Of a DNA stretch of 64,000 bases, positions 137 through 34,572 are shown piece after piece. The translations under genes and the position numbers were made by a program. Origin of the DNA: Macrostomum lignano (Eukaryota); the NCBI GenBank assembly GCA_002269645.1, contig NIVC01000438.1:62001-126000 (forward strand). The letters run 5' to 3'. The notes under the pieces are model-generated. The model ran no database searches and was not told the origin of the DNA. It was given only the letters and a program-made list of their open reading frames with translations. Numbering within the stretch: the stretch's first letter is position 1; every line of letters begins with the position of its first letter.

Positions 137-612
137 AACCGCAGCCGACAACTCAGCTGAAGCTCGAAAGCTGCTCGCAGAGCTCAACGTCTTGGTTGGG
201 CGTTTGTGAACGAGCAATTGACGGAAACAGAAACCAAGACTACTATGGAGGCTCCTGCGCCCACACCAGAAAAAATCTGTTCGAATGGTGGGAGGGGCAG
301 CTGGCCGCTCCATCGCTTGTCTCTTACGTCACCATCTACAACAGGCAGGACTGCTGCGCTGAGCGACTCAACAAATTCTCGCTGCAGGTGGACGGCGTCG
401 AGTGCAACCGATTGAGCCTGACGGTGCCGTTCTCCGTGGCCAACTTCAGCTGCAACGCCTTCGGCAGCCGAGTTCGAGTCAGCGTGCTCAGCCAGTACCT
501 GAGTACCTGGGCATTTGCGAGATTGAGGCTTACACGCTTAGCTGGGGCGGTGGCGAATAGCCGCGTCGACCTCGAGTGCATCTGCACAATGGAACTTCGA
601 GCAGTCATCTGA
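137..612 (+). pseudogene. F-type lectin exon 2 of a PAN + F-lectin gene (exon 1 lies mostly upstream of the window); C-terminus frameshifted
   Basis: Donor ATTGTCG|GT at 11/12, acceptor TTCCAG|137 (phase 1). Translates EPQPTTQLKLESCSQSS...AIDGNRNQDYYGGSCAHTRKNLFEWW...YNRQDCCAERL, an exact H-x26-R-x-D-x4-R F-lectin motif. An 8-bp tandem duplication AGTACCTG (494-509) shifts the frame before the conserved ICEIEAY strand. Confidence 0.88.
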
Positions 613-1154
613 AAAACTGAAAGGCTGTGACGGAAACCAGAGCAACCAATAAAACTTGAAGTCCTTTGTAGATCCCTTGAAGCATTCAAAAATGAATGAT
701 GTCTTGCGATTTGAAAGCATTGATTTCTGTTGCTTTGGGTGTGAGACCTCAGAAAGCTGTTGGCTAGCCATGACTCGGTTTTTAATTGAGCAGATTGAAC
801 AACCTCGAATGCAACTGCCGAATGGAAACCGGAGCAATCAATAAAACTTTCAGCTCGCTGCAGGAACCTTCAAGCGTTCAAAAATGCATATGCGAATTGC
901 AGCTTGGAATTTTCGATTTTTGTTGCTTTACGTATGGGACCTCAGAAAGCAGTTAGTCATAACTCAGTTTCAATGGAAAAAAGCACAGACAATTTATAAG
1001 TAGTTGGAAGTCCTTAGTCCCAAGGTTCCGTGTGGATGGTTTCAATTTCATCCAATAAGCTGATGGAGGAGAGCCACTGCAGTGAATTGGATTGCCTCTC
1101 TGAGTCAGGAGATGTCATCTCGAATAAGTTATAATGTAATTTATTTATTTTACC

Positions 1155-1256
1155 CCATCGATACAAAACAGAAGCCAAGTAAGTCTAAGAGAAAAATTCA
1201 AATCGAATTGCGTGAGGGGAAGCTGGCCGCTCCATCGTTTTTCACTTACGTCACCG
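1155..1256 (+). pseudogene. Decayed F-lectin exon remnant, cut off by the adjacent insertion
   Basis: GAGGGGAAGCTGGCCGCTCCATCG...TTACGTCACC matches the conserved lectin core; the upstream part matches other remnants (8340, 13765, 15918, 21755, 29700). Confidence 0.7.
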
Positions 1257-1289
1257 CGTTACGCTACGTTAAACAGTACAATTGCGAGT

Positions 1290-2483
1290 ACTTTTAAAAA
1301 GTCTTCATTGCTTTGATTAAAAAGACTACAGAGTCTGATCTCCTCACTTGAAAAATTTATTCAGCTACCGCTTACACACTACTGTCCTGATCGAGCTACT
1401 GCAAGTTTTTAAGTAGTCTCATATTCTATTCTTCAAGATATTCTGCAAGAGCAATGAGCATTTGCTCAGGAGTTCTTGTTACTGAGTTGTTGCCCAATAT
1501 TTTCATTTTCATAAAATTCTCAAAGTTTGAGAACCCCCTCAGTTGCACTGGTGTAGCAGTCTATTGTTTATTAATTGTTTATTTTTTATTTGTACCAGTG
1601 CAAATAAATCGCAACTGATGGATACATGGTATATATTCCCCACTTATACCAGTTGCAAAGCATTTGCTCAAGAAAAAGCGAGGCTGCTTTAAAACTGACT
1701 CCGCTGGTAAGCTCTCTTATAAAAATTTCTTGCTTTTTCTTTTTCTCTTTTTCTTTCTGTTTCCCTTCTCGCAAGCCAGTGTCTTAGTTATGTAAGCTTC
1801 AGATGCACACAAAGGTCAATCGAATCAACTGGGAAGACGTCTTGTTTACTGTATGGTTTAAAGTGGCTGAGAATTTTGCTCTGGTCCACAGAGGAAACTC
1901 TCAGAGCTTAAGGATTTTCTTTATTCATATCCTCTTTGAGCATTTGCTCGCACTTCAAGATTATTGTTCCCTTTTGTCTATGGTTTCCGGCATTCATACT
2001 TGCGGTAACAATTTAATTGTTTGTCGGCTTTTTTCGATTGTTGCCGGATTTCAGACGAATGTATTTGGCCGCACGAAAACAGATGAGAGACTTTGGCGCC
2101 TAGTAAGTTCCATCCTGCTTTCGAAGGGATGAATAGAAAAGCCTCAGATAATCGTTCAAAAATCGATCCGGAACACGCTCAAACTCCTGGCAGAGCCCCT
2201 TCTCGTTGAGGAACTGTCGGAACCTTGCCACGTGAAGCTTCCGTTGCGTCTCGGTCGATTTCGGCACTGAGTCACTCTCAAGTCGGTCCAACATTTCCAG
2301 ATCTTCGCTACCTAGCTCAGGCAGCCCGTTGGAACTGGACGACGCATCCAGGTTGTCCATCTCCAGAACGTAGCGCGTGCTCGACTCTCGGGTGACAAAA
2401 GCCAACTCGTCCGTGGAGAGTCCACATATTTCTCCGCCAGGAATGTTTGCGTAGCGAATCATAGCTAGTTTTCCTATTTGCAC
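1290..2483 (-). mobile_element. Degenerate Crypton-like (DUF3504-type tyrosine recombinase) element
   Basis: ORF 2483-2100 ends FLNDYLRLFYSSLRKQDGTY* and continues APKSLICFRAA, matching the LxxFYxxxRKxDGxxYxxxSL pattern of Crypton/KCTD1/ZMYM-type recombinases. A frameshifted HFGLRGRE-like stretch (CACTGGCTTGCGAGAAGGGAA) lies near 1760-1782. Many stops; element ends not resolved (probably ~1257-3040). Confidence 0.65.
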
Positions 2484-3044: not shown

Positions 3045-3416
3045 CTGACTGCCATCAGAGCTCCACTGCCTTTATATACAGCGGATTCTGCAAGCACGCT
3101 ATCGACAGAAACAGGAACCAAAACTATTTTAATGATTTGTCCTGCACCCACACGGACCGCAACCCCTTTCGAATAGTGGGAGGGGCAGCTGGCCGCTCCA
3201 TCGTTTGTCTCTTACGTCACCATCTACAACAGACAGGACTTCTGCCCTGGCCGACTCAACAAATTTTCGCTGCAGGTGGACGGCGTCGAGTGCAACCGAG
3301 TGAGCCTGACGGTGCCGTTCTCCGTGGCCAACTTCAGCTGCAACGCCTTCGGCAGCCGAGTTCGAGTTGTTAACCTTTGTAAACTTCCTGTAACGATTTG
3401 CGAGCTTGAGGCCTAA
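3045..3416 (+). pseudogene. Type-B F-lectin exon (C-terminus VRVVNL..PVTICELEA*), disabled, no exon 1
   Basis: DCHQSSTAFIYSGFCKHAIDRNRNQNYFNDLSCTHTDRNP, then a +1 frameshift and TGG>TAG (~3165-3177). Resumes ...YNRQDFCPGRLNKF...ICELEA TAA(3414-3416). Confidence 0.85.
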
Positions 3417-3579
3417 GCAAGACTAAGCAAGACTCTCTACTAAGCAAGCTGTTATTGCAAGTCAGCAGTGATGAATATTGAAATTTCAATTATATTGGAA
3501 TTAGAAGATTAAAGCAACACGGATGAAAGTTTGAAAATCTCTATTGACTTCCTAAATAGAATTGACTCTGCTTATGTGG

Positions 3580-5220: not shown

Positions 5221-5279
5221 TGTCGATGATTTCCAAAAATGACTCGCATGGAGCAACTGATCAAAATTTCTAGTAAACC

Positions 5280-5863
5280 ATGAGGGCAATCCTGCTGCTT
5301 TTTCTATTGTTTGCGTTCGGCCTTTCGGTTGTCATGGCGACGCAAAGCATGTACGCGGCTGTTAAAAAGTGGAGCCTGTCGAAAATCCGTGAGCTGTACA
5401 ATTACGAGTGTATTCATTTAAATCTCTAAATCTCCAAGCAAAAGTATGACTGTCACTTCCAGAGTTGCGGCGAACAAATCGTCTATCTTTTGATGGCTGC
5501 ACGCAGAGCTCAACCTTGGGTTCTTACCGTTGTGGCCGGGCAGTAGACGGAAACCGAAACCAAGACTCATACTCAGGTGCCTGCTCTCACACCAATAAAA
5601 ACCCGTTCGAATGGTGGGAGGGGCAGATGGTCGCTCCATCGTTTGTCTCTTACGTCACCATCTACAACAGGCAGAACTGCTGCCCTGGCTGTCTCAACGA
5701 GTTCTCGCTGCAGGTGAATGGCGTCGAGTGCAACCGAGTAAACCTGACGGTGCCGTTCTCCGTGGCCAACTTCAGCTGCGACTCGTTCGGCAGCCGAGTT
5801 CGGGTGACGAACCTGCTCAGCCAGTTCCTGACCATTTGCGAGATCGAGGCTTACAGGCTGTAG
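5280..5863 (+). CDS. Secreted single-domain F-type lectin lacking the PAN domain (2 exons: 5280-5388, 5463-5863)
   Basis: ATG 5280, MRAILLLFLLFAFGLSVVMA signal peptide, donor AAAATCC|GTGAG (phase 1), 74-nt intron, acceptor TTCCAG. Exon 2 is open to TAG 5863. The sugar motif is altered: RQNCCPGC. Confidence 0.8.
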
Positions 5864-7073: not shown

Positions 7074-7894
7074 ATGAAGCTAATTCTGCTGCTGCTGCTG
7101 CTATGCTCTACATGGGAAGTTTCGTTTGCCATGAGCATCCACATCCAATTCATGGCAGTCAAACTGCGCAGCAACTCGACTCCAGTTGCCATGGAGACCC
7201 TGCCTGGTAAAGATTCAATGAACTGCGCCACGCTCTGCGCTTTGAGGCCCACCTGCTTCGGCTTCAGCTGGCTGCAGGGTCTGTGCCGGCTCTTTGACTG
7301 GCTGGCATTCAGCAGCACGGATGGCTGGCAGGCATCGGAGTCATGTGACGTGTACACCAGGATTGTCGGTAAGATGTTATGCACTAGTATTAGGAACTTG
7401 ACTAATTCACTCTGTGCAAATTTATAGTGTGCCTAAATTGAACGCGACAATTAAGCTCGTGGTAACATTATTTTGACCGCAAATAACTTCCAGACTCACA
7501 GCCACAAACTCAGCTGAAGCTCGAAAGCTGCTCGCAGAGTTCAACGCACGGGTCGAACGTTTGCGGACGAGCAATTGACGGAAACAGGAACCAAGACTAC
7601 TATGGAGATTCCTGCGCCCACACCGAAAACAACCCGTTCGAATGGTGGGAGGGGCAGCTGGCCGCTCCATCGTTTGTCTCTTACGTCACCATCTACAACA
7701 GGCAGGACTGCTGCACTAATTGGCTAAAAATATTCTCGCTGCAGGTGGACGGCGTCGAGTGCAACCGAGTGAACCTGACGGTGCCGTTCTCCGTGGCCAA
7801 CTTTAGCTGCAACGCCTTCGGTAGACAAGTTCGGGTGACAAACCTGCTCAGCGAGTACCTTACCATTTGCGAGATCGAGGCTTACAAGCTGTAG
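7074..7894 (+). CDS. Secreted PAN/apple + F-type lectin, intact (exons 7074-7368, 7494-7894)
   Basis: Signal peptide MKLILLLLLLCSTWEVSFA; PAN core C-x3-C-x5-C-FGFSWLQGL-C; phase-1 GT-AG intron. F-lectin ...SCAHTENNPFEWW...RQDCCTNW (last motif Arg>Trp)...ICEIEAYKL*. Confidence 0.92.
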
Positions 7895-10958: not shown

Positions 10959-11796
10959 ATGAGGCAAGGTCCGCTCCTTCTGCTGCTGTCTCTGGCTGGA
11001 CTCGCATTCTCGGAAGTCACGACATCCGAAATCGTGTTTGCTGCCGTAAAACTGCACAGCATCTCGACTCCAGCTGCCATGGAGTCGGCGCCAGGACTCG
11101 GCAGGTTGGAATGCGCCGAGCTCTGCTCTGTGAGGCCCGCCTGCTTCGGCTTCAGCTGGCTGCAGGGTCTGTGCCGGCTCTTTGACTGGCTGGCGTTCAG
11201 CAGCCCGGATGGCTGGCAGGTCTCGGAGTCATGCGATGTGTACACCAGGATTGTCGGTAAGACGACATACACCCTGTATTAGAATTTTATACTAATTTAC
11301 TTTTACGATTTCATATTGTGCAATATTGCTTCAGCTTCAGATGGAAAGCTTGTGGAACAGGTACTTTGACTCCAAATAACTTCCAGACCCGCAGCCGCCA
11401 ACTCGGCTAAAACTCGAAAGCTGCTCGCAAAGCTCAACGTATGGGTCAACGTAACGTATCGCTTGTGAACGAGCAATTGACGGAAACAGAAACCAAAACT
11501 TCGGTGCAAATTCCTGCGCCAACACCGGAAACAACCCGTTCGAATGGTGGGAGGGGCAGCTGGCCGCTCCATCGTTTGTCTCTTACGTCACCATCTACAA
11601 CAGGCAGGACTGCTGCCCTGAACGACTCGAAAAGTTCTCGCTGCAGGTGGACGGCGTCGAGTGCAACCGAGTGAACCTGACGGTGCCGTTCTCCGTGGCC
11701 AACTTCAGCTGCAACGCGTTCGGCAGCCGAGTTCGGGTGACAAACCTGCTCAACGAGTACCTGGGCATCTGCGAGATCGAGGCTTACAGGCTGTAG
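10959..11796 (+). pseudogene. PAN + F-lectin gene with premature stop in exon 2 (exons 10959-11256, 11387-11796)
   Basis: Intact signal peptide/PAN exon. A net 9-nt duplicative insertion (TCAACGTAACGTA) creates in-frame TAA at 11452-11454. The motif His is also replaced by Asn (SCANT). Confidence 0.88.
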
Positions 11797-12487: not shown

Positions 12488-13311
12488 ATGAAGCTAATTC
12501 TGCCGGTTTTGCTTTGCTCTGCGTTGGAATTTTCGTTGGCCATGAGCGTTCAACTCCAATTCAAGGTGGTCAAACTGCGCAGCAACTCGACTCCAGTTGC
12601 CATGGCGACCCTGCCTGGCAGAGATTCAATGAACCTCGCCACGCTGGGTTTGAGGCCCGCCAGCTTCGGCTTCAGCTGGCTGCAGGGTCTGTGCCGACTC
12701 TTTGACTGGCTGGCATTCAGCAGCACGGATGGCTGGCAGGCGTCGGAGTCATGCGATGTGTACGCCAGGATTGTCGGTAAGAGGTCATGCACCAGTATTA
12801 GGAACTTGACTAATTCACTCGGTGTAAATTATTTATGAGCATTAATAATCATATAGTTTAGTGACAAGCTCCTGGTGCAATTAGTAGTACTTTGGCCGCA
12901 AATAATTTCCAGACTCAGCCCTAAACTCAGCTAAAATTCGAAAGCTGCAAGCAGAGCTCAACGATCGTCTCGAGCGTTTGCGGACGAGCAATTGACGGAA
13001 ACAGAAACCAAGATTACATGCACTTGTCCTGAACCCATACAGAAAACAACCCGTTCGAATGGTGGGAGGGGCAGCTGGCCGCTCCATCGCTTGTCTCTTA
13101 CGTCACCATCTACAACAGGCAGGACTGCTGTGCTGAACGACTCAACAAATTCTCGCTGCAGGTGGACGGCGTCGAGTGCAACCGAGTGAGCCGGACAAAG
13201 TCGTTCTCCGTGGCCAACTTTAGCTGCAACGCCTTCGGCAGCCGAGTTCGATTCAGCGTACGTAGTCTGTACCTGTTTATTTGCGAGATCGAGGCTTACA
13301 CGCTTAGCTGA
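12488..13311 (+). pseudogene. PAN + F-lectin gene, Cys-depleted PAN, exon 2 frameshifted (exons 12488-12776, 12913-)
   Basis: PAN reads MNLATLGLRPASF versus MNCATLCALRPACF (3 Cys lost). A 2-nt deletion at the start of exon 2 gives a tail ending TGA 12993-12995. The lectin frame also has TGC>TGA. Confidence 0.87.
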
Positions 13312-13764: not shown

Positions 13765-13875
13765 ACAAAAACATGAGCTAAATTTGAAGGCCAAATCCAA
13801 ATGGTATGGTGGGAGGGGCAGCTGGCCGCTCCATCGCTTGTATCTTTTGTCTCCATCTACAACAGGCAGGACTGC
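13765..13875 (+). pseudogene. Decayed type-B F-lectin exon remnant
   Basis: TGGTGGGAGGGGCAGCTGGCCGCTCCATCGC...ATCTACAACAGGCAGGACTGC core, truncated by deletion. Confidence 0.75.
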
Positions 13876-14742: not shown

Positions 14743-15559
14743 ATGGGCCAAGAACGCCTACTTTTACTGCTAATTCTCTTTGCGATCGCAGTTTCTGTTG
14801 TCATGGCGACGCCGATGGTGTACTCGGCAGTTCGAATGCACAGCATCTCGACTCCAGCTGCCATGGAGTCGGCGCAAGGACTCGGCAGGATGAAGTGAGA
14901 CCCGCCTGCTTCGGCTTCAGCTGGCTGCAGGGTCTGTGCCGACTCTTTGACTGGCTGGCGTTCAGCAGCACGGATGGCTGGCAGGTCTCGGAGTCATGCG
15001 ATGTGTACGCCAGGATTGTCGGTAGGACGGCATAAACCAAGCATTGAGAATTTTACTAACTCACTCTGTGCGAATTCATGGAGTGCATTATTCATATTGC
15101 TTAAGTTTTTAAAGGTGGCAGTCGTGGAACAGGTATTTTGACCGCAAATAATTTCCAGACCCGCAGCCGCCAACTCAGCTAAAACTCGAAAGCTGCTCGC
15201 AGAGCTCAACGTCTCGGTTGGGCGTTTGTGAACGAGCAATTGACGGAAACCGGAACCAAAAATACGGTGCAGGCTCCTGCGCTCACACCGGAATAAAGCC
15301 GTTCGAATGGTGGGAGGGGCAGCTGGCCGCTCCATCGCTTGTCTCTTACTTCACCATCTACAACAGGCAGGACTGCTGCGCTGAGCGGCTCAACAAATTC
15401 TCGCTGCAGGTGGACGGCGTCGAGTGCAACCGAGTGAACCTGACGGTGCCGTTCTCCGTGGCCAACTTCAGCTGCAACGCCTTCGGCAGCCGAGTTCGGG
15501 TGACAAACCTGCTCAGCGAGTACCTTACCATTTGCGAGATCGAGGCTTACAGGCTGTAG
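14743..15559 (+). pseudogene. PAN + F-lectin gene with exon-1 frameshift; exon 2 (15159-15559) intact with canonical motif
   Basis: A net 19-nt deletion after GGCAGG gives TGA at 14896-14898. Donor 15021/15022. Exon 2 reads NQKYGAGSCAHTGIKPFEWW...RQDCCAERL...AYRL*. Confidence 0.88.
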
Positions 15560-15917: not shown

Positions 15918-16190
15918 CTATTGACACAAACAGGAACCAAATCCAAAAATCAAGTCGAAATCGAATTGTGGGAGGTGCAGATCCATCGCTTGTCTCTTAC
16001 AACAGGCAGGACAGCAGACTGGCCGACTCAGCGAGTTCTCCCTGCAGGTGGACGGCGTCGAGTGCAACCGAGTGAGCATGACGGAGTCGTTCATCGTGGC
16101 CAACTTCAGATGCAACGCGTTCGGCAGCCGAGTTCGAACTGTTACCTTCGTAAACTTCCCGTAACGATTTGCCAGCTTGAGTCCTACCTA
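15918..16190 (+). pseudogene. Decayed type-B F-lectin exon
   Basis: ATTGACACAAACAGGAACC...GTGGACGGCGTCGAGTGCAACCGAGTG...GTAACGATTTGCCAGCTTGAG with internal deletions. Confidence 0.8.
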
Positions 16191-17187: not shown

Positions 17188-17238
17188 ATAGAGTTTATTT
17201 CTTATCGAAGGTCTACCTTTAGGAAAATTTATCTCTCG

Positions 17239-18573
17239 ATGGCTAAAGTATCGCTGAACCAAGTGTTTTTTTATGTTTTGAACGACGAGTATGTTGAGCT
17301 GCCGGAAAATTCCAATACGAAAGAGAGAGATAATCTAAAAAGAAAAATCAGAGAAAAGAGCAAAAACTTCACGATTCATGAAGGCTCGTTGTACTATCAA
17401 GTCAAGAACAAAGCGGACAGTCAGAGGAGGTCTGAAGAGAAGCGCAAAGTTCTTTACGACATCGCAGAAGTCAAGAGCAAAATGCAAGCTTTGCACATTC
17501 AGGGAAGTCACGTAGGTATAAAGAGCACATTGAGCCTCTTTACGTCGAGGTACTTCGCTGACTTCCCTGTATCGCCAATAGCCAAATCCGTTGTGGAAGC
17601 TTGTGCCAAGTGTGAAGTGGTCAACAAGAAATTTTCAACCAAGCAAAGCGAAATTCATCCGATTGAAATACCGGACAATGCGAGCAGGCTTTTTGGGTTT
17701 CTTTGTGTCGACTGCATCACGATGCCAACGACCACCGATTCAGGATCCAAGTACATTCTGACAGTGTGCTGTAAATTTACGAAGTTTGCTGTATTCCGGC
17801 CTCTGTCTAACATCCAAGCTGCATCCATCGCGAAGGAACTGAAGGACCTCTTTGCACTGTTCGGTTGGCCGCGCATTATCCTCAGCGATCAGGGACGGGA
17901 GTTCTGCAACTCAATTATTGACGTCCTTCTAGAATCTGGTGGAACTGAAAGACGAGTAACAAGCGCGTATCACCCAGAGACTAACGGACAGACCGAACGC
18001 TTGAAACAGACCTGCATCAGTCTATTAAGAAAGTGTTGCTCATCAGAGAATCCAACTGACTGGGACACCAGGCTCAATGAAATTCAACTGGCCTACAATA
18101 GCCGACGACATTCAGTCACTGGAATTTCACCATTTCAGGCCGCGTTTGGTTTCGAACCTTTGCTAGGCAACCAGGCAGCGGCGCTGCTGCCTACTGCCTC
18201 GATGCCTAAGTTTGCACCTGTAAATCGGGGTTGGATGATCGAGAAGAACAAACAGCGAGCTGCATCCCAAAAATTCATCGCGCGGAGAATCAAACTGAGC
18301 CAGCAGCGAATGAAAAAGGGCCACGCAGCTTTACGAACTCGAGCGGAGGAGTTCAAGGTTCGAGATCGGGTGAGACTTCGAAACACACGCCGAGACGACA
18401 GGAAGGGCGGAAAGCTGCAGAAGACGTGGAGTGAGCGGGTCTACCGCATCATCAAATGCCTCGGCAAAAATACTTATCAGCTGGCTGGGTTGTCAAAATG
18501 TGTAAACGGAAAGCATCTGAAGAAGGCTGTGGCTCATCACTCTTCATTCAGCGGATCGCCTGTTTTTGATTGA
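17239..18573 (+). CDS. Gypsy-type/GIN1-like integrase (transposase), 444 aa, intact
   Basis: HHCC zinc domain (H..GSH...CAKC), DDE triad (CVDC, SDQGREF, NGQTERL), AYHPETNG motif, C-terminal FKVRDRV..KLQKTW region. Own ATG and a GIN-like N-terminus (EGSLYY). Confidence 0.92.
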   Translation: MAKVSLNQVFFYVLNDEYVELPENSNTKERDNLKRKIREKSKNFTIHEGSLYYQVKNKADSQRRSEEKRKVLYDIAEVKSKMQALHIQGSHVGIKSTLSLFTSRYFADFPVSPIAKSVVEACAKCEVVNKKFSTKQSEIHPIEIPDNASRLFGFLCVDCITMPTTTDSGSKYILTVCCKFTKFAVFRPLSNIQAASIAKELKDLFALFGWPRIILSDQGREFCNSIIDVLLESGGTERRVTSAYHPETNGQTERLKQTCISLLRKCCSSENPTDWDTRLNEIQLAYNSRRHSVTGISPFQAAFGFEPLLGNQAAALLPTASMPKFAPVNRGWMIEKNKQRAASQKFIARRIKLSQQRMKKGHAALRTRAEEFKVRDRVRLRNTRRDDRKGGKLQKTWSERVYRIIKCLGKNTYQLAGLSKCVNGKHLKKAVAHHSSFSGSPVFD

Positions 18574-19299
18574 TCGAATTACATGTAGATTGGTGAATCA
18601 AGTAACAGTTTTTAGGTTGACAATGTATAGTATCAATAGCTTTAATTTTACTTCTGTTTGGAGTGTGTGAAATGCAAAATAGTGATTGAAAATATACTCG
18701 GTTAAAGAAGCATGACGCAGATGTTTGCCAATTAAAAAGTAGCAAAAAGTTTTTTCTACTTTGTGAAAATTGATTTCGAAATTTTGCTATTCCAAACCTC
18801 GGATATCAGTAGCCGGATGTCCTAAAGCAAACCTCTGTCTCCGCAGGCTGACCCCTCTCTTTCAACCTACAGTCGGATGTCCTAAGACAATTTCCCTTCT
18901 TCTGATCTCCGGGCCGGATAGCAGAGTCAGTGCCGTAGGAGATGTCCGGGAGAGACATCTCAAAGTGCCCCGGACAATGCAAAGCAGCTCAAGATATCTG
19001 GGAAGGAGAAAACAAAGCAGGTTTTTTGCCTGGCACTATCCGGGCGGATATCGTAAGTGCGTTAGGATATCCGGACCAGACAAAAAAACCCCGGAAAGTA
19101 TAAAGTGTAACACCTGGTGTGTTTAAAATCCAGAAGCGCAGGCTCGTACTGTCTCACTGCAAGTCTAAAAAACATGGACCAAGTTCTGTTTTCCTCCCTT
19201 GCACTGCCACTGCTTGCTGCCTTCTACCATGTAGGCGTCAACGCCAATTGGCCTGAAAGACCAGGTCGCTTGTTCAGTAGCTCCTGTCAGGATCTTGAC

Positions 19300-19560
19300 A
19301 AAATGACTGGCACTTGACCTGACTTGAAAGTCATTCAATGCAGCGCAATATCCCATCTGCTCAGGTGCATCAACCCCCCCCCCCCACCGATGCATGTGAC
19401 GAAATGCGCCTGCCAGCCTGGCCAACCACGACTAGCACAATCGTTGCTATGGTAACGGTCCTACATAGAAAATTCCCACAGGCCCTCGCCACAAAGCCCC
19501 TGTGTTTTATGCTGGGTTCAACAGCTGCCAATTTGAAATTTTGCCCTACCACTATTTTCT
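19300..19560. repeat. Dispersed ~260-290 bp repeat (second copy 22585-22872)
   Basis: Both copies start ATGACTGGCAC and end CTACCACTA, and share GTTGCTATGGTAACGGTCC..TAGAAAATTCCCACAGG. Confidence 0.7.
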
Positions 19561-19599
19561 GATGATGAACCCTGAAGGCCCGCAGACAGGCAGAGGCAA

Positions 19600-20125
19600 G
19601 AGCTCTCACAAAGAGCTCTTGGGAACGCCTCGAAGAGGACGTTATCGAAGGCGCCAATGATGTCCAGGAAGATCCCCAGAGCGAAGCCGCTGCCAAGCAC
19701 GGCCTTCTCAAGTTTATCTACCAGGACGTGCAGCGCGCTTTCAGTGGAGCGACCCGCCCAAAAGGCGTGCTGGTTCTCACTGAGAGGTTTGTTCTTCAGC
19801 TCTACGGAGAGGAGGCGCCAAAGCACCGGTCTCTCTATCAGCTTGACCAGGGAGAAGGTCAGGCTGATCGGTCTGAAGGATTTGATAGAATGGTAGTCCG
19901 GGTGGCCTGGCTTAGGGATAAAAATCACCTTTGCCTCGGTCCAAACCTGTGGGACATAACCAAACGTGATGCATGCCCGAAAGAGGCTGCAAAGTTTACG
20001 CAGGAAGCCTGGGCATTTAACCGCCTCTCTTAGGAGTCCCGGTACAATGCCGTCGGGTCCTGGGGCTTTGAAAGGTTTGAAGGAATTAGCCGCTCTCACG
20101 ATGCGGTCCTCCGTGATGATAGGGT
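19600..20125 (-). mobile_element. Non-LTR retrotransposon reverse transcriptase fragment (R1/LOA-like)
   Basis: KAPGPDGI...WTEAKVIFIPKPG..Y...KSFRPISL...QHAF..GRSTESAL...FLDIIGAFDNV; truncated before the YADD motif. Confidence 0.9.
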
Positions 20126-20194
20126 TTACCCCCGATTCGCCGAATCCCGATTTGCCGATTCCCAGCTCGCCGAATCCCGAGTCGCCGATTTCCG

Positions 20195-20602
20195 ATTTGC
20201 AGAAATTCCACATTTGCCGAAATTCCTCATTTGCCGAAATTCCTCATTTGCCGAAATTCCTCATTTGCCGAAATTCCTCATTTGCCGAAATTCCTCATTT
20301 GCCGAAATTCCTCATTTGCCGAAATTCCTCATTTGCCGAAATTCCTCATTTGCCGAAATTCCTCATTTGCCGAAATTCCTCATTTGCCGAAATTCCTCAT
20401 TTGCCGAAATTCCTCATTTGCCGAAATTCCTCATTTGCCGAAATTCCTCATTTGCCGAAATTCCTCATTTGCCGAAATTCCTCATTTGCCGAAATTCCTC
20501 ATTTGCCGAAATTCCTCATTTGCCGAAATTCCTCATTTGCCGAAATTCCTCATTTGCCGAAATTCCTCATTTGCCGAAATTCCTCATTTGCCGAAATTCT
20601 CA
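20195..20602. repeat. 17-bp minisatellite (TTGCCGAAATTCCTCAT)n, ~23 copies
   Basis: Perfect tandem copies; explains the 17-aa periodic ORFs in all frames. Confidence 0.97.
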
Positions 20603-20870
20603 TCCTTGGATTGGATGACGCAAATGTCCCTGTTAGACAGGTCCGATCTGAGCCACGCACTGAGCGTTTTGATCGCAAAGATGCAAGCTCTGGGAGGCTA
20701 AAATAGCATTACAACTCATGTGTTGCGCTAAAAGGGTAACATAACTTATTGCGTATTATACAGTAACATGGTTCATTGTTAAGGTTCAGTTGCGCATGCG
20801 TGCACTTACCTACTTACAGTAGCATCCTATGATTAACTTATTTTACCTTTTTTACGGGAGGTAGAACACT

Positions 20871-21754: not shown

Positions 21755-22062
21755 GTTCTGCTAATCGACTAAAACAGGAGCCAAACCCAAAGGCCAAATC
21801 AAAATCGAATTTTGTAAGGAGCAGCTGGCCGCTCCATCGCTTGTCTCTTACGTCACCATCTATAACAGGCAGGACAACAGACCAAAGCAGACTGGCCGAC
21901 ACAGCGAATTCTCCCTGGACTTGAACGCTCTTCGGCGCCAATTTCAGATGCAACGCCAATTCAGCAGCCGAGTTTCAGGTTGTTCATCTTTATGAAGATT
22001 CTCTGGACAGTCTGCACTACAATGATTTGACGATTTTCGAGATTGAGGATTATACGCTGTAA
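21755..22062 (+). pseudogene. Type-B F-lectin remnant fused directly to a lectin upstream region (whole gene deleted)
   Basis: 21480-21754 matches the region just before the ATG of the 7074/12488 genes (…ACACTGACACCAGGTTCTGCTA) and joins ATCGACTAAAACAGGAGCC of a type-B exon. Confidence 0.75.
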
Positions 22063-23133: not shown

Positions 23134-23956
23134 ATGCGCCAAAAACGCCTACTTCTACTGCTAATTCTCTTTGCGATCGCAGTTTCTGTTGTCATGGCGA
23201 CGCCGATGGTGTACACGGCAGTTCGAATGCGCAGCATCTCGACTCCAGCTGCCATGGAGTCGGCGCCAGGACTCGGCAGGTTGGAATGCGCCGAGCTCTG
23301 CTCTGTGACGCCCGCCTGCTTCGGCTTCAGCTGGCTGCAGGGTTTGTGCCGGCTCTTTGACTGGCTGGCGTTCAGCAGCACGGATGGCTGGCAGGTCTGG
23401 GTGTCATGCAATGTGTACGCCAGGATTGACGGTAAGACTTCATGCACCCAGTATTAAGAAATTTACTAATTTACTTTTACGATTTCATATTGTGCAATAT
23501 TGCTTCAGCTTCAGATGGAAAGCTTGTGGAACAGGTACTTTGACCCCAAATAACTTCCAGACTCGCAGCCGCCTACTCAGCTAACACTCGAAAGCTGCTC
23601 GCAGAGCTCAACGTATTGGTTTGGCGGTTGTGAACGAGCAATTGACGGAAACCGGAACCAAGACTACTTTGCAGGCTCGTGCGCCCACACCGGAAAAAAT
23701 CTGTTCGAATGGTGGGAGGGGCAGCTGGCCGCTCCATCGCTTGTCTCTTACGTCACCATCTACGTACAACAGACAGGACTTCTGCCCTGGCCGACTCAAC
23801 AAATTTTCGCTGCAGGTGGACGGCGTCGAGTGCAACCGAGTGAACCGGACGGTGCCGTTCTCCGTGGCCAACTTCAGCTGCAACGCCTTCGGCAGACGAG
23901 TTCGAGTTGTTAACCTTCGTGAAATTCCTGTAACGATTTGCGAGCTTGAGGCCTAA
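23134..23956 (+). pseudogene. Chimeric PAN + F-lectin gene with 4-bp frameshift (exons 23134-23431, 23561-23956)
   Basis: Intact exon 1; exon 2 NQDYFAGSCAHTGKNLFEWW. A TACG duplication at 23761-23764 shifts the frame exactly where the sequence switches to the type-B copy of 3225-3416. Confidence 0.87.
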
Positions 23957-25507: not shown

Positions 25508-26091
25508 ATGAGGGCAATCCTGCTGCTTTTTCTATTGTTTGCGTTCGGCCTTTCGGTTGTCATGGCGACGCAAAGCATGTACGCGGCTGTTAAAAAGTGG
25601 AGCCTGTCGAAAATCCGTGAGCTGTACAATTACGAGTGTATTCATTTAAATCTCTAAATCTCCAAGCAAAAGTATGACTGTCACTTCCAGAGTTGCGGCG
25701 AACAAATCGTCTATCTTTTGATGGCTGCACGCAGAGCTCAACCTTGGGTTCTTAACATTGTGGCCGGGCAGTAGACGGAAACCGAAACCAAGACTCATAC
25801 TCAGGTGCCTGCTCTCACACCAACAAAAACCCGTTCAAATGGTGGGAGGGGCAGCTGGCCGCTCCATCGCTTGTCTCTTACGTCACCATCTACAACAGGC
25901 AGGACTGCTGCCCTGGCCGACTCAACGAGTTCTCGCTGCAGGTGAATGGCGTCGAGTGCAACCGAGTGAAACTGACGGTGCCGTTCTCCGTGGCAAACTT
26001 CAGCTGCGACTCGTTCGGCAGCCGAGTTCGGGTGACAAACCTGCTCAGCCAGTTCCTGACCATTTGCGAGATCGAGGCTTACACGCTGTAG
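25508..26091 (+). pseudogene. Duplicate of the PAN-less F-lectin gene with nonsense codon (exons 25508-25616, 25691-26091)
   Basis: Near-identical to 5280-5863. TAC>TAA at 25753-25755, but the canonical RQDCCPGR motif is retained. Confidence 0.88.
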
Positions 26092-27301: not shown

Positions 27302-27978
27302 ATGAAGCTAATTCTGCTGCTGCTGCTGCTATGCTCTACATGGGAAGTTTCGTTTGCCATGAGCATCCACATCCAATTCATGGCAGTCAAACTGCGCAGC
27401 AACTCGACTCCAGTTGCCATGGAGACCCTGCCTGGTAAAGATTCAATGAACTGCGCCCCGCTCTGCGCTTTGAGGCCCACCTGCTTCGGCTTCAGCTGGC
27501 TGCAGGGTCTGTGCCGACTCTTTGACTGGCTGGCATTCAGCAGCACGGATGACTGGCAGGCATCGGAGTCATGTGACGTGTACACCAGGATTGTCGGTAA
27601 GATGTTATGCACTAGTATTAGGAACTTGACTAATTCACTCTGTGCAAATTTATAGTGTGCCTAAATTGAACGCGACAATTAAGCTCGTGGTAACATTATT
27701 TTGACCGCAAATAACTTCCAGACTCACAGCCACAAACTCAGCTGAAGTTCGAAAGCTGCTCGCAGAGTTCAACGCACGGGTCGAACGTTTGCGGACGAGC
27801 AATTGACGGAAACAGGAACCAAGACTACTATGGAGAATCAATAAAACTTTCAGTCTTCTGTAGGAACCTTCAAGCATTCGATAATGGATATGTCTTGCGG
27901 CTTGGAAGTTTCGATTTTTGTTGCTTTATGTATGGGACCTCAGAAAGCAGTTGGCTAGTCATGACTCATTTTCGATGA
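27302..27978 (+). CDS. PAN protein with truncated lectin domain and novel read-through C-terminus (exons 27302-27596, 27722-27978; 183 aa)
   Basis: Copy of the 7074 gene up to DYYG. A deletion junction at ~27835 joins 3' flank sequence like 11905 onward, in frame, to TGA 27976-27978. Confidence 0.6.
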
Positions 27979-28439: not shown

Positions 28440-29257
28440 ATGAAGCTAATTCTGCTGGTTTTGCTTTGCTCTGCGTTGGAATTTTCGTTGGCCATGAGCG
28501 TTCAACTCCAATTCAAGGTGGTAAAACTGCACAGCAACTCAACTCCAGTTGCCATGGAGACCCTGCGTGGCAGAGATTCAATGAACTGCGCCACGCTCTG
28601 CGCTTTGAGGCCCGCCTGCTTCGGCTTCAGCTGGCTGCAGGGTCTGTGCCGACTCTTTGACTGGCTGGCGTTCAGCAGCACGGATGGCTGGCAGGCCTCG
28701 GAGTCATGCGATGTGTACACCAGGATTGTCGGTAAGATGTTATGCACTAGTATTAGGAACTTGACTAATTCACTCTGTGCAAATTTATAGTGTGCCTAAA
28801 TTGAACGCGACAATTAAGCTCGTGGTAACATTATTTTGACCGCAAATAACTTCCAGACTCACAGCCGCCAACTCAGCTGAAGCTCGAAAGCTGCTCGCAG
28901 AGTTCAACGCACGGGTCGAACGTTTGCGGACGAGCAATTGACGGAAACAGAAACCAAGACTACTATGGAGATTCCTGCGCCCACACCGAAAACAACCCGT
29001 TCGAATGGTGGGAGGGGCAGCTGGCCGCTCCATCGTTTGTCTCTTACGTCACCATCTACAACAGGCAGGACTGCTGCACTAATTGGCTAAAAATATTCTC
29101 GCTGCAGGTGGACGGCGTCGAGTGCAACCGATTGAACCTGACGGTGCCGTTCTCCGTGGCCAACTTTAGCTGCAACGCCTTCGGTAGACAAGTTCGGATG
29201 ACGAATCTGCGCACCGGGTACTTTACCTTTTGCGAGATCGAGGCTTACAGGCTGTAG
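28440..29257 (+). CDS. Secreted PAN + F-type lectin, intact chimera (exons 28440-28731, 28857-29257)
   Basis: Upstream region and exon 1 are of the 12488 type with all Cys kept; intron and exon 2 are of the 7074 type (RQDCCTNW). Ends VRMTNLRTGYFTFCEIEAYRL*. Confidence 0.92.
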
Positions 29258-29699
29258 CTGAGCTGGTGGCGAATGGCCTCAGCGACCTGCACAATGGAAC
29301 TGCAAGCTGTAATTTTGAGAAACTGAACGGCTGTGATATGAAAACAGTTGCAATCAATAAAAGTTTAAGAACATTCTGCAGAAACTTTCAAGCATTCAAA
29401 AATGAGTATGCCTTGCAGATTGGAAGTTCAAGTATTTTTGCTTTTTAGTTTATGGGACCCCAAAAAGCACTTAGCAAGTCGAATCGGTTTTCAAATCAAA
29501 CAGCACTGACATATTTTATAAGTTTGAAGCCCTTCGTGTCGATGTTCCGTGTGGATACTCTCAATCTGATCCATAAAGCGGGCTGCTGATGGAGAAGGGC
29601 CATCGCTCCACTACACTGAATCGGGTTGCTTCTCTTCATCGGTAGATTTCTAGAGATATCATCTCGAAATTGATTAAGTAATTTTTTATTCTACCTTAA

Positions 29700-29905
29700 G
29701 GACGCAAGACAGAATCCAAATCGAATTGTGGGAGGCGCAGCAGGCCGCTCCATCGTTTGTATCTTACTCTTACGTCACCATCTATAACAGACTGGCCGAT
29801 TCAACGAGTTCTCCTTGCGCATGAACTGCAGCGAGTGCAACCGAGTGAGCCTGACTGCCATTATCAGTGGCCGATTATACATGCAACGCTTTCGGCAATC
29901 TTGTC
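29700..29905 (+). pseudogene. Decayed type-B F-lectin exon remnant
   Basis: GAATTGTGGGAGGCGCAGCAGGCCGCTCCATCG...TACGTCACCATCTATAACAG...GAGTGCAACCGAGTGAGCCTGAC. Confidence 0.75.
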
Positions 29906-30819: not shown

Positions 30820-31010
30820 TACACAGCAGTATCACAGTACACAGCAGTATCACAGTACACAGCAGTATCACAGTACACAGCAGTATCACAGTACACAGCA
30901 GTATCACAGCACACAGCAGTATCACAGTACACAGCAGTATCACAGCACACAGCAGTATCACAGTACACAGCAGTATCACAGTACACAGCAGTATCACAGT
31001 ACACAGCACA
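30820..31010. repeat. 18-bp minisatellite (ACACAGCAGTATCACAGT)n, ~10-11 copies
   Basis: Direct inspection. Confidence 0.95.
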
Positions 31011-31400
31011 CACCTGCAACGGCTGCGGACAGTTGCGACTCCAATCACCAGAGTACATATCATGCCTTACATGAGATCCAAGATTTAAAAGCGCTGAATA
31101 AAACAAATTAACCATGGAAGACTAAGAAAACAAATTAAATATTGCCATGCCACATGTTATGTAATCAGCTCGACACCTTCAAAAGTTTCCTAAAATTTGA
31201 CTTCCTGGCCGTAATAGTAGCTAGCTAAATGTTACAATTTGAGATAGCTTAATGTTTGCAGTATTTGATGTTATTCGATTGTACGAGCGCACTTGTTCTT
31301 TGATGGCGAGCTGTAAACACCACTGCCTATGTTTCCATATTGGACTCGATTTGCATCCGCATTCCGCACTGAGCCGCTGACATGAGGCTCCAGTGTTCGC

Positions 31401-32073
31401 CTAAAGGCAGCTGAAGTTGGCCACGGAGAACGGCACCGTCAGGTTCACTCGGTTGCACTCGACGCCGTCCACTTGCAGCGAGAATTTGTTGAGTCACTCA
31501 GTGCAGCAGTCCTGTCTGTTGTAGATGGTGACGTAAGAGACAAGCGATGGAGCGGCCAGCTGCCCCTCCCACCAATCGGCATTGCTGCGGGACAGATGCA
31601 TGAAGATTTGGTCCCTGTTTCCATCGATAGCTCGTTAGCAGAATCCGCCTCTTGTGGAGCTCTGGTTGCAGCCAGCAAGGCTGGGCTGAACGGGTCCTGT
31701 TGAGTTGCAATGGCATCATCGAGTTACTGTCACTTGATTTCATTTCTTAAACAACTATGCAATCAATATACTTACGTATTATAGTCATGGTGTACACGTT
31801 GCATGACTCCGAGACCTGCCAGCCATCCGTGCTGCTGAATGCCAGCCAGTCAAAGAGCCGGCACAGACCCTGCAGCCAGCTGAAGCCGAAGCAGGTGGGC
31901 CTCAAAGCGCAGAGCTCGGCGCATTCCAACCTGCCGAGTCCTGGCGCAGACTCCATGGCAGCTGGAGTCGAGATGTTGTGCACTTTTACGGCAGCAAACA
32001 TGATTTGGGATGTCATGACAGCCGAGAATGCGAGTCCAGACAGAGACAGCAGCAGGAGTGGACATTGCCTCAT
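31401..32073 (-). pseudogene. Inverted PAN + F-lectin gene, exon 2 disabled (exons 32073-31776, 31696-31401)
   Basis: Exon 1 MRQCPLLLLSLSGLAFS...CAELCALRPTCF intact; 79-nt phase-1 intron. Exon 2 has GAA>TAA, loss of the CxHT segment and the motif Arg CGA>TGA. Confidence 0.87.
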
Positions 32074-33763
32074 GTTTCAAGACTTACCTCGCACCTGGGT
32101 TGATTGAGACTTGTGGAAAATCTTCGCTGCGTTTCTCCTAGTAAAAATCTATTCGTGAGTGAAGACTAAGAAAGTCGAATACGAAATGGAAAAAGAAGTG
32201 AAGACAAACAATGTCCGGGATCCAATTGGCTATTGTCCTAGCATAATTTGTTCGAAGTCGGTGTCAAAGAAAGCTGCTTGCTATGTTTGCCCTGTATACG
32301 GTAGCTCATATGCCAAACCGGTCTCCCTTGGCTTGAATTTCTGAATTCACCCCATTAATATATAGACATTGTTTCTACTTTTTTGTGCTTTAATTTCTTT
32401 TTAGGGTGGTGGGTCTTGACAAACCAGGAACTGTTTGACAAGAACAAACAAGTAAGGCTTCATAACCAGCTGATATTGTTGTTTGCATACAATTTGAGGA
32501 AATTGCATATCTAGCAGCTTCTACATACGCTCGCACATGTAAATGGAGGCACGCTATGATTTTTGGCAGGGGCTGTGTGCACCCTGGCGCAGTTTAAGCG
32601 ACATTGTCACACAACCGGCGAGAGGCATTACTGCCCATTGCGCTGACTCCCCTAAGAAGGCACACAAGCGCACTGATACATACGCAGTCACACGCACAAG
32701 CACATGTACACTTCATTGTGCCTTGAGGGTTGGCCGGCCTTAAGGGCGTTAGTTGCACGAGCAGATCGAGCCAAGCCGAGATTCGATTTTAGCCCCAAAT
32801 TACTGTGACTGCAGTTGGAATTGAGCCCGGGCCGCAGGCATGTAAGAGCGTCGCGGTAGACCGCTGGGCTACGGCACTCAGTCACGCTATTGCAGACTTT
32901 CGCAGAACCGTTAGCAGCATTTTCACAAAAATGTGCACATCCATTCTAAACTCTACTTCTTTAAACGGCATTTTACGGAAAGTTTATTTCAAATTTGGCA
33001 TACTAGCGTGCGCCGCTTAAGTCACGAGCTCGAATCTGCAGCAACTAAACCAACCGTACACATTGGGTAGCAAACAAGTGTGAGGCGAGGCACATCCTAG
33101 ACAGTTGGTTGACTGCAAGTCGGTAGTGACAGTCGGACCGATTCTGGAAAAAGTTGGTCCCTGCCGAGCTCAGTGGAAGATTCGAACTCGCAACCAGAAA
33201 CCGCAACCCTAACCGAAACGAAGAAGTAGGCTGCCAAAGAAAATCTTATTTTCCAACAGACCAAATGAGCTTAGACACAGACCAAATGATGTTTTTCACG
33301 GCCCCGTTGATTTTTTCTCATCACCTTTGCCTGTCAATCATCCTGGGTAAAAGTTGCTGTTCCGACAATATTCAAAGCAAAAAAGTTTCTAAATGTAGTG
33401 AAAAAAGATACATTAAGCATCGCTTTTAGAATTCAAAAGCTACCAGGGTATGCCATAATGCATCATGCATAGTAGCTCCTCCTCCCGATAGAAGATTTAT
33501 CATTCATGCATGAATAAAATTTAAGACAAAGCCAACATCCCAGGAAGCTGACTTTCTCTGACGCCATTAACACATGCAAACACTTCCGGTAGAGCGTGAA
33601 ACTCTTTTGTTTGCTTTCGCATCGTTTCAATTTCCTGTTCGACTGCCCCACTATTAGCTAGGCTTCCATTAGGGCTTGGATGCAATTGTTATAAGGAGAC
33701 ACGCAGTGAAGTTTGGCCATGCACAAGTCTCCATCAGCCCTGCTAAACAGCAAGTCTTGAGGC

Positions 33764-34572
33764 ATGAGGCAAGGTCTAATTCTGATGCTGTCTCTGTCAG
33801 GACTCGCATTCTCGGCAGTCACGACATCCCAAATCATGTTTGCTGCCGTAAAACTGCACAACATCTCGACTCCAGCTGCCATGGAGTCGGCGCCAGGACT
33901 CGGCAGGTTGGAATGCGCCGAGCTCTGCTCTGTGAGACCCGCCTGCTTCGGCTTCAGCTGGCTGCAAGGTCTGTGCCGACTCTTTGACTGGCTGGCATTC
34001 AGCAGCACGGGTGGCTTGCAGGTCTCGGAGTCATGCGATGTGTACACCAGGATTGTCGGTAAAACGTCACGCACCATGTATTAGGAATTTGACTAATTCA
34101 CTTTGTGAGAATTCACGGTGTGCATTAATAATATTGCTTAAGGTACAGGTACTTTGACCGCAAATAATTCTCAGACTCGCAGCCGCCAACTCGGCTAAAA
34201 CTCGAAAGCTGCTCGCAGAGCTCAACGTTTGGGTCTAGCGTTTGTGAACGAGCAATTGACGGAAACCGGAACCAAGACTACCGTGCCGATTCCTGCGCCC
34301 ATACCGGAATAAAGTCGTTCGAATGGTGGGAGGGGCAGCTGGCCGCTCCATCGCTTGTCTCTTACGTCACCATCTACAACAGGCAGGACTGCTGCCCTAA
34401 ACGACTCGAAAAATTCTCGCTGCAGGTGGACGGCGTCGAGTGCAACCGAGTGAGCCTGACGGTGCCGTTCTCCGTGGCCAACTTCAGCTGCAACGCCTTC
34501 GGCAGCCGAGTTAGAGTGGTTAATCTTCAAGACTTTCCTATAACGATTTGCGAGCTTGAGGCGTCTAGTTGA
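33764..34572 (+). CDS. Secreted PAN + F-type lectin, intact, canonical fucose-binding motif (exons 33764-34058, 34175-34572)
   Basis: Signal peptide, PAN, phase-1 intron, NQDYRADSCAHTGIKSFEWW...RQDCCPKRL, type-B C-terminus VVNLQDFPITICELEASS*. Confidence 0.93.

Follow-up and report, generated by a model that had tools for sequence, protein, structure and literature searches.

The chicken immunoglobulin (Ig) pseudo-V arrays, the major histocompatibility complex (MHC) and the killer-cell immunoglobulin-like receptor (KIR) clusters combine few functional genes with many pseudogenes, contain conserved blocks that flank variable segments, and form mosaic genes by segmental exchange. Among the lectins, the eel fucolectins (1K12; A. 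japonica eFL-1 to eFL-7) are secreted proteins with a single F-type lectin domain (FTLD), occurring in several isoforms, the variation being centred on complementarity-determining region (CDR) 1 and CDR2 of a conserved fold with its Ca motif and cysteines, and with His52 and CDR4 strictly kept (PMC5712786). In oyster sperm bindin (Crassostrea gigas), FTLD diversity arises partly by recombination, which takes place in a mid-FTLD intron, and positive selection acts on eight pocket sites; 1-5 repeats of a single-copy gene are combined by splicing, and some variants lack the His-Arg-Arg triad (PMC5712786). The fucose motif to which this triad belongs consists of His52, Arg79, Arg86 and the contiguous Cys82-Cys83 of the eel agglutinin (Arg-x-Asp-x4-Arg/Lys; PMC5712786). 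In the current work, a tandem array of FTLD genes with an N-terminal PAN/Apple-like module was analysed in Macrostomum lignano, where it occupies positions 137-34572 of a stretch of 64,000 nt (contig NIVC01000438.1 of assembly GCA_002269645.1, positions 62,001 to 126,000 of the forward strand), the whole of which is referred to below as the window.

Like the eel fucolectins, the array products are predicted to be secreted single-FTLD lectins in several isoforms that vary around CDR1 and CDR2 and share the conserved fold, the Ca motif and the same cysteines. They differ from them by the extra N-terminal module, by shorter loops, by a majority of pseudogenes and by an incomplete triad in most of the intact copies, which have Trp or Cys for Arg86. 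With bindin the array has in common an FTLD diversity generated in part by recombination and the presence of variants devoid of the His-Arg-Arg triad, but it is a multigene tandem array, its junctions are located in conserved exon blocks, and its ratio of nonsynonymous to synonymous divergence (dN/dS, or omega) is not above 1. The best match in the PDB by sequence, MsaFBP32 of the striped bass (3CQO), has the short CDR1 found here; however, it carries two tandem FTLDs per chain and no PAN module, whereas the array proteins have one FTLD. Exon 1 shares the cysteine-rich pattern C..C..CFGF..C..C with the apple domains of Toxoplasma MIC4 (4A5V), an example of PAN/Apple domains associated with lectins or acting as such, although it scores under the Pfam PAN_1 threshold and its fold model is of low confidence. 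Mosaic genes among many pseudogenes recall the pseudo-V type of cluster, but no evidence of programmed, somatic or adaptive exchange is seen here. Taken as a whole, the locus is probably a tandem birth-and-death lectin cluster subject to short-tract gene conversion, of a family which in the databases searched is confined to M. lignano.

Conserved blocks and units of the array

Using tblastn, blastn and motif scans, 13 gene units and five decayed exon-2 copies were delimited in the array, the exon-1 and exon-2 copies being recovered (tblastn and motif scans, E-values of 1e-25 to 1e-75) at the positions which the initial annotation had assigned to them. Three stretches stand out by the near absence of synonymous divergence (dS) between copies, and are given here in the coordinates of gene D, which serves as the reference copy:

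7236..7368, +: PAN-core block (CFGFSWLQGLCRLFDWLAFSS...), dS 0.13 versus 0.47-0.69 in the rest of exon 1
7637..7714, +: block 1 of the FTLD (FEWWEGQLAAPS.VSYVTIYNRQDCC; FEWWEG...RQDCC), dS 0-0.04
7733..7822, +: block 2 of the FTLD (FSLQVDGVECNRV.LTVPFSVANFSCNAFG; FSLQVDG...NAFG), dS 0.10

The units and decayed copies that share these blocks are, in their order along the window:

137..541, +: unit A, exon 2 only, exon 1 lying before the window start; pseudogene with the triad His-Arg-Arg (AER); an 8-nt duplication at 496 (TACCTGAG/TACCTGGG) shifts the frame ahead of the conserved ICEIEAY end
1203..1312, +: decayed exon-2 copy 3' of A, in which only block 1 (60/77 identical to D) and the beginning of block 2 can be recognised
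3083..3416, +: unit B, pseudogene made up of exon 2 alone, without exon 1; 1-nt insertion, in-frame TAG at 3174, RQDFCPGR
5280..5863, +: gene C; exon 1 5280-5388 (phase 1), intron 5389-5462, exon 2 5463-5863
7074..7894, +: gene D; exon 1 7074-7368, intron 7369-7493, exon 2 7494-7894
10959..11796, +: unit E, pseudogene; exon 1 10959-11256, exon 2 11387-11796; in-frame TAA at 11453, brought in by a 9-nt insertion; Asn in the place of the pocket His
12488..13311, +: unit F, pseudogene; two PAN cysteines gone, 2-nt deletion and TAA near 12925, TGA at 13031
13806..13875, +: decayed exon-2 copy 3' of F, of which block 1 alone is left (65/70 identical to D)
14743..15559, +: unit H; exon 1 14743-15021, frameshifted by a 19-nt deletion (junction at ~14894) in which CAELC is lost; exon 2 15159-15559 intact (His-Arg-Arg, AER)
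15920..16187, +: decayed exon-2 copy 3' of H, nearly full-length
21763..22061, +: fragment J, decayed exon-2 copy, nearly full-length
23134..23956, +: unit K, chimeric pseudogene; 4-nt insertion TACG at 23761, at a junction within block 1, shifts the frame
25508..26091, +: unit L, pseudogene and twin of C (98% identical); TAA in frame at 25753
27302..27836, +: unit M, twin of D, pseudogene; exon 2 cut after DYYGE at 27836
28440..29257, +: gene N, intact, 230 aa; exon 1 28440-28731, exon 2 28857-29257; triad His-Arg-Trp
29721..29895, +: decayed exon-2 copy 3' of N; block 1 66/70 identical to D, stops elsewhere
31407..32073, -: unit P, the sole inverted copy, pseudogene; exon 1 open, exon 2 with TAA (31635-31637) and TGA (~31494), homology ending after block 2
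33764..34572, +: gene Q, intact, 230 aa; exon 1 33764-34058, exon 2 34175-34572

A PAN exon is present in nine of the 13 units, while exon 1 is short and restricted to a signal peptide in two, lies off-window in one and is missing in one. Open reading frames (ORFs) are retained only in D, N and Q (PAN and FTLD) and in C (signal peptide and FTLD, no PAN), the remaining units being broken by stops, frameshifts, deletions or chimeric junctions, which leaves 3-4 intact copies out of about 18. The 12 two-exon genes announced by the initial annotation were roughly correct as a number of units.

The reference gene D encodes 231 aa, carries the triad His-Arg-Trp (TNW) and is 99% identical to a UniRef protein of M. 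lignano (P0001). Its exon 1 ends in phase 1 at a GTAAG donor, followed by an intron of 125 nt; exon 2 is closed by TAG, with an AATAAA located 99 nt 3' of this stop. The corresponding product consists of a hydrophobic leader (read by eye), a cysteine-rich module and a single FTLD, in this order. The intact product of gene C (169 aa) is made up of a signal peptide, which is all that its exon 1 encodes, and an FTLD (Pfam F5_F8_type_C_2, 7.7e-8) with a degraded pocket motif (RQNCCPGC), and no AATAAA was found in the 400 nt past its stop. In unit M, the truncated exon 2 is fused to an E-type 3' untranslated region at a GGAG microhomology. Gene Q is the only intact copy with the full His-Arg-Arg fucose triad (RQDCCPKR).

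Four of the decayed exon-2 copies lie 360-660 nt 3' of the stops of A, F, H and N; because of this recurrence, the ancestral repeat unit was probably a gene plus a decayed copy. These 3' fragments were also considered as a second FTLD exon, a possibility which was rejected since they are situated beyond the stop codon and the AATAAA and carry stops and frameshifts.

Silent-site uniformity and mosaic copies

Across the seven units that can be aligned, nucleotide diversity amounts to 0-0.05 in the three blocks. The loop segments have 0.19-0.27 and the C-terminal variable segment up to 0.47, to be compared with 0.2-0.45 for the intron and 0.4-0.55 for the flanks; the codons neighbouring the blocks have a pooled dS of 0.34-0.86 (Nei-Gojobori). 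Ordinary purifying selection, in which a constant protein is maintained over free silent sites, is observed at the AIDGNRNQ Ca motif that adjoins the blocks (dS 0.36-0.65, dN/dS 0.04) and at the ICEIEAY end (dS 0.37-0.61, dN/dS 0.09-0.21). At codons whose amino acid is invariant, a silent variant is seen in 2 of 44 columns within the blocks, as opposed to 10 of 25 outside them (Fisher p = 3.7e-4). Together with the dS values listed above, this bears out the description by the initial annotation of the DNA encoding FEWWEGQ...NRQDCC and FSLQVDG...NFSC as almost identical between copies, silent sites included. The blocks are equally uniform in obvious pseudogenes, and in the five decayed copies block 1 still matches D at 78-94% identity, and at 88-94% in four of the five, the remainder being poorly alignable or unalignable. 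The GC content of third codon positions (GC3) is 0.84-0.89 in the blocks and 0.48-0.61 in the rest of exon 2, or in summary 0.87 versus 0.57, as expected under GC-biased gene conversion.

A paralog outside the array (P0009; locus L001 10001-10657, NIVC01001584.1, GCA_002269645.1) allows constraint on the protein to be separated from constraint on the DNA. This unlinked gene is single copy and lacks the PAN-FTLD intron, has Gln for His and Gly for Asp in its pocket, and could be a retrocopy or an ancestral form; its GC3 is 0.80 in the blocks versus 0.72 in the rest. Compared with D, its block peptides are nearly the same (nonsynonymous differences per site, pN, 0.06-0.08), whereas dS reaches 0.54 (block 1) and 1.28 (block 2). 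Since the peptide is kept over diverged silent sites, it is the protein that is constrained in the blocks and not the nucleotide sequence; silent identity is thus peculiar to the copies linked in the array, and points to concerted evolution. Gene conversion is the best explanation for this invariance of silent sites in the scaffold, for which the initial annotation had offered no cause.

A function of the blocks as DNA or RNA (through an antisense coding gene, targeting by small RNAs or RNA structure, for example) is a further explanation, to which scarcely any probability is given here. An antisense frame is open over both FTLD blocks for 114-192 aa in the seven copies A, C, E, F, K, L and Q (...VLPVVDGDVRDKRWSGQLPLPPFE...; for example 34222-34788, -), and in the decayed copies it is block 1 that has been preserved best. 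However, stops interrupt this frame in D and N, both of them intact, and its start is not consistent; an antisense gene was rejected for these reasons, and the frame probably results from the richness in GC of third codon positions. A nucleotide-level element was likewise rejected, as no Rfam family matched anywhere in the window and the silent sites of the unlinked paralog, whose peptide is kept, are free to change. Moreover, the three blocks, distributed over two exons, behave alike and are all found at recombination junctions.

These junctions become apparent from segment-wise distance matrices, in which the nearest neighbour of a copy switches between segments. Recombination was tested with a statistic patterned on the pairwise homoplasy index (PHI): the clustering of compatible sites seen in the data was matched by 0/2000 permutations, and the four-gamete test was failed by 33% of the informative site pairs. 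Gene N has an F-like 5' flank and signal peptide and is D-like from the PAN block onwards, the junction being located in that block. In unit K, an H-like exon 1 is followed by an E-like intron, by A-like CDR1 and CDR2 segments and, from ~23704, by a B-like 3' half; its switch in block 1 coincides with the 4-nt insertion and with the left edge of a 98% duplication. Gene Q is E-like up to the Arg86 segment and then continues with a B/K-like C-terminal segment, with the junction in block 2, where the partner of unit H switches as well. The duplication in question is segmental: 3168-7608 recurs at 23704-27836 with 97-98% identity, both of its edges are situated within genes, and the left edge (3168/23704) falls in block 1. 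The copies are therefore mosaics of shuffled variable modules with junctions inside the blocks, from which we infer gene conversion as the cause.

The near-identity of the two duplicated segments is the level expected of haplotypes or homeologs, and it may be asked whether concatenated haplotypes or homeologs of a recently duplicated genome have inflated the copy number, the lesions being sequencing errors. Unit H, which is broken here, has an intact H-like counterpart in another assembly (P0004), in agreement with such an artefact. A very slight probability is nevertheless assigned to it, since outside the blocks the units are 15-60% divergent and possess three unrelated types of 5' flank and signal peptide, which is far past allelic divergence, and since the twin segments end at chimeric intragenic junctions (the 4-nt insertion and the GGAG microhomology) rather than in co-linear flanks. 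The lesions are mostly substitutions to stop or multi-nucleotide indels, not homopolymer errors. In addition, the independent assembly contains at least eight matching distinct paralogs, among them D, an H-like and an A-like copy, as well as a fused E+F model in which the order is as here and the F-specific defects recur (P0002, P0010). The copies are therefore real paralogs, and the proviso of the initial annotation that they might be mis-assembled haplotypes of one or two genes no longer applies. Many predicted family proteins of the other assembly (P0003, P0004, P0005, P0006 and P0011) stop at ...NAFGSRVR, before the last beta-strand; the gene predictor may have taken the GGTGAC found there for a splice donor, or else these models may be incomplete.

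With mosaic genes whose junctions lie in the blocks, the array invites a comparison by analogy in which the blocks would be kept as recombination 'handles' and the pseudogenes and decayed copies would form a reservoir of cassettes, from which CDR1/CDR2, Arg86-segment and C-terminal modules would be transferred to the few expressed PAN-FTLD genes. Such a role has a slim chance of being correct, no sign having been found that the exchange is programmed or adaptive. If true, it would represent a gene-conversion-based diversification of lectin binding loops, in the germline or even somatic, like that of the chicken pseudo-V arrays.

The lectin domain and its pocket loops

Assignment of the second exon to the F-type lectins, as made by the initial annotation, is firm with respect to sequence, fold and Pfam score. 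In phmmer searches of the PDB, the FTLD matched FBP32 (3CQO, 4.8e-26, both domains), eel agglutinin (1K12, 3.3e-11), 2J22/2J1R (about 5e-9) and lectinolysin (about 2e-7), that is, including pneumococcal and S. mitis fucose modules, and it scores 41 bits for Pfam F5_F8_type_C_2 against a cut-off of 27.8. The FTLD part of an AlphaFold2 model has a predicted local distance difference test score (pLDDT) of about 70-90, and its best 11 Foldseek matches in the PDB are all F-type lectins (target TM-scores 0.67-0.76 for single-domain entries), the Anguilla anguilla agglutinin 1K12 being the best fold match in addition to a significant sequence match. Family members are labelled 'FTP domain-containing' in UniProt. 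The cation motif AIDGN (AVDGN in C and L) is present in every copy but B, and the cysteines of the three known disulfides align with the eel protein, including those at SC(A)H, ICE(I/L)E, VECNR and NFSC (Cys50-Cys146, Cys108-Cys124), for which the residue roles were taken from PMC5712786. Block 2, the most conserved stretch over all M. lignano subfamilies, holds two N-glycosylation sequons in all copies, NLT (RVNLTVP) and NFS/NFT (ANFSC), of which NFS/NFT is retained even in the most divergent subfamilies without the fucose triad (P0051, P0160, P0149).

The PAN/Apple assignment of the module encoded by exon 1, also proposed initially, is weakly to moderately supported. An exon-1 family profile matched in the PDB solely the MIC4 apple domains (4A5V, E = 4.1e-4, two domains), five cysteines (C51, C55, C61, C71, C91) are invariant, and UniProt labels P0002, P0006 and P0140 'Apple domain-containing'; however, the Pfam scores remain below the respective gathering scores, with 16.4 bits (D) and 19.8 bits (Q) versus 21.4 for PAN_1, and 15 bits versus 21.1 for PAN_3. 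For D, N, Q and C, the sequences predict secreted and calcium-stabilised lectins as products, the prediction of secretion being based on hydrophobic N-terminal leaders that were read by eye.

The initial annotation had listed nine variants of the loop around the pocket His, every one of which is present: DYYGGSCAHTRKNL (copy A), NYFNDLSCTHTDRNP (B), DSYSGACSHTNKNP (C and L), DYYGDSCAHTENNP (D and N), NFGANSCANTGNNP (E), DYMHLS*THTENNP (F), KYGAGSCAHTGIKP (H), DYFAGSCAHTGKNL (K) and DYRADSCAHTGIKS (Q). All of the listed tails that follow RxDCC (AER, PGR, TNW, PER, PKR) were also recovered, in addition to PGC in C and TE* in P. Four of the nine loop variants (B, E, F, K) stem from copies with stops or frameshifts, and two more from copies broken elsewhere (A, H). 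The alignment to eel agglutinin (1K12) is free of gaps from the His to the Arg. Accordingly, THGSNVCG takes the position of CDR1 (including Glu26 and His27), (Q)DYYGDS that of CDR2 (including Phe45 and Tyr46), TENNP that of the loop after His52, and TNW/AER/PGR/PER/PKR that of Gly84-Glu85-Arg86, which by homology places the variable segments at the fucose pocket, as had been claimed.

The pocket residues themselves differ among copies: the Arg86 position is Trp in D and N, C reads RQNCCPGC and E has Asn for the pocket His, and the full fucose motif is found also in the pseudogenes A, F, H and L. Ligand preference probably differs between copies, or fucose binding has probably been lost in some, judging from these substitutions. 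In other M. lignano subfamilies (P0051, P0160, P0149, P0011) the triad is mostly lost yet block 2 is almost unchanged; therefore, constraint in the family is strongest on a surface other than the canonical fucose pocket, and some members may bind other ligands or may use block 2 for another contact.

Pairwise dN/dS of the pocket loops (29 codons) was pooled according to Nei-Gojobori with bootstrap 95% intervals. For the intact genes C, D and Q the resulting value is 0.48 (0.20-0.99). Addition of H, which gives the four intact copies of exon 2, raises it to 0.67 (0.37-1.19), and further addition of A and E to 0.83 (0.48-1.45), whereas the pseudogenes B, F, K, P and L have 0.43 (0.19-0.85). Loop evolution looks weakly constrained to neutral, and the contrast between loops and scaffold is made by the scaffold. 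Though variable, the loops are not hypervariable as initially described, their diversity (and that of the C-terminal segment) being at or under the level of intron and flanks, and adaptive diversification, for which the initial annotation had named a loop dN/dS of at most 1 as contrary evidence, finds no support in the pooled values of 0.48-0.83, which lie within that bound, albeit at low power.

These data bear on the proposal of an adaptive glycan-recognition repertoire serving immunity, mucus or gamete recognition, in which diversifying selection would split the pocket loops on a constant scaffold. Several observations accord with it: the variable segments correspond to CDR1, CDR2 and the Arg86 position, modules are shuffled among copies, the many FTLD architectures of M. 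lignano indicate a domain heavily used there, and in the larger sequence sets the bootstrap intervals of omega extend up to 1.2-1.45. Eel fucolectin isoforms and oyster bindin display the same pattern, with positive selection and recombination acting together (PMC5712786). On the other hand, so few copies are intact that a diversified set of many functional variants is not supported; the pooled loop omega of the intact genes was counted as not above that of the pseudogenes; loop diversity does not exceed intron diversity; the triad is lost in D, N, C, E and other subfamilies, which resembles relaxed constraint more than tuning; and no supporting description was found in the literature. From the likeness to FREP or Sp185/333 families, recombination that shuffles variable elements can be retained, but not the many intact variants nor an omega above 1. 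A diversifying immune or gamete repertoire is thus regarded here as rather unlikely.

Under the preferred explanation of a birth-and-death cluster with short-tract conversion, three processes would combine. The beta-sandwich core and the PAN core are under strong purifying selection at the level of the protein, as shown by the same residues being kept in the unlinked paralog over heavily diverged silent sites. Short-tract gene conversion, or non-allelic recombination, of linked copies would homogenise the three blocks, pseudogenes included; the mosaicism, the positions of the junctions, the silent-site deficit and the high GC3 are the observed facts that it addresses. The segments between the blocks, which surround the fucose pocket by homology, drift near the neutral rate (dN/dS about 0.5-0.8). 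The appearance of an invariant scaffold with variable loops would then result from these three processes together, with no sign of unusually fast loop evolution.

Several points weigh against this explanation or restrict it. Conversion is deduced from pattern only, and it is unusual that two homogenised blocks are separated by only 18 variable nt, a spacing which requires very short tracts, heteroduplex rejection or selection at that segment. The dN/dS values derive from 3-7 recombining sequences in D coordinates, so that single selected sites would be missed, and recombination in the array would bias codon site models. Some lesions may be assembly- or allele-specific (for example, the H deletion); an intact ORF, such as those predicted in D, N, Q and C, is no proof of function; and the array genes are missing from an NCBI protein set that does hold the unlinked paralog, the only family member found in it. 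As for the PAN part of the products, residues 14-99 of the AlphaFold2 model have a pLDDT below 50.

Distribution, surrounding sequence and significance

Eleven homologs of the spliced D model were found, all of them in M. lignano, which bears out the flatworm origin presumed by the initial annotation. In a profile search of 1.84 billion representative proteins, which returned 6546 FTLD relatives, PAN and FTLD were found in one stretch only in M. lignano among the best 150 of the 6546, which were inspected (distant cases being possible), and no PAN was seen in ten multi-FTLD proteins of the same list. Other FTLD partners in M. lignano are Kringle, WSC and Sushi domains, and a fibrinogen-domain protein matches the PAN part. 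FTLDs are already known from planarians (PMC5712786). No description of the present PAN-FTLD family was found in the searchable literature, and a 2025 review of F-type lectins mentions neither flatworms nor PAN. It is thus an undescribed family of a known lectin kind, annotated automatically in UniProt, with a domain pairing that is possibly new.

The array is interrupted by retrotransposon remnants (17239..20213) and is followed in the window by mobile and repetitive sequence, the features of which are:

17239-18573, +: integrase ORF, retrotransposon remnant (Pfam rve 3.9e-9)
19518-20213, -: reverse-transcriptase fragment (Pfam RVT_1 1.3e-8)
20195-20603: perfect tandem repeat, 17-bp x 24, which together with the retrotransposon remnants lies between unit H and fragment J
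36394-38082, -: ORF of 562 aa with a Transposase_21 (tnp2) domain (6.6e-9), in an AT-rich stretch (GC 0.31); DNA-transposon copy directly past the last lectin gene
35948-36415, - and 35203-35541, -: ORFs adjoining the transposon copy, without Pfam match
52104-52766, - and 53659-54153, -: ORFs resembling exons of a family-X DNA polymerase (pol lambda/mu/TdT type), with DNA_pol_B_palm (3.9e-5) and pol-lambda fingers (1.9e-5) both just below cut-off
30819-31008, 39872-40316, 41701-42306, 49886-50607, 52791-53552 and 54173-54792: six more tandem-repeat arrays

The repeat types of the latter comprise 18-bp x 10.6, a CTCTC-type microsatellite, 20/40-bp x 27, 21-bp x 35, 16/32-bp x 48 and a nested 28/62/117/262-bp array, and the six arrays give rise to long spurious ORFs. 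The distance from the lectin array to the polymerase ORFs, which lie downstream of it, is ~18-20 kb; minisatellites separate and adjoin these ORFs, and no evidence links them to the array. Pfam scans of the ORFs 2100-2483, 35203-35541, 46040-46471 and 16784-17056 returned no match.

F-type lectin families varying at CDR1 and CDR2 were known already from eels and oysters, and what is new is a family with a PAN/Apple-like module in M. lignano, which is a laboratory model. More generally, the locus illustrates a trap, in that short-tract conversion in a tandem array can mimic a constant scaffold with hypervariable loops without diversifying selection. For the family itself, the genes D, N, Q and C differ at fucose-contacting residues and thereby constitute natural variants for tests of the specificity conferred by Arg86 and by CDR1/CDR2.

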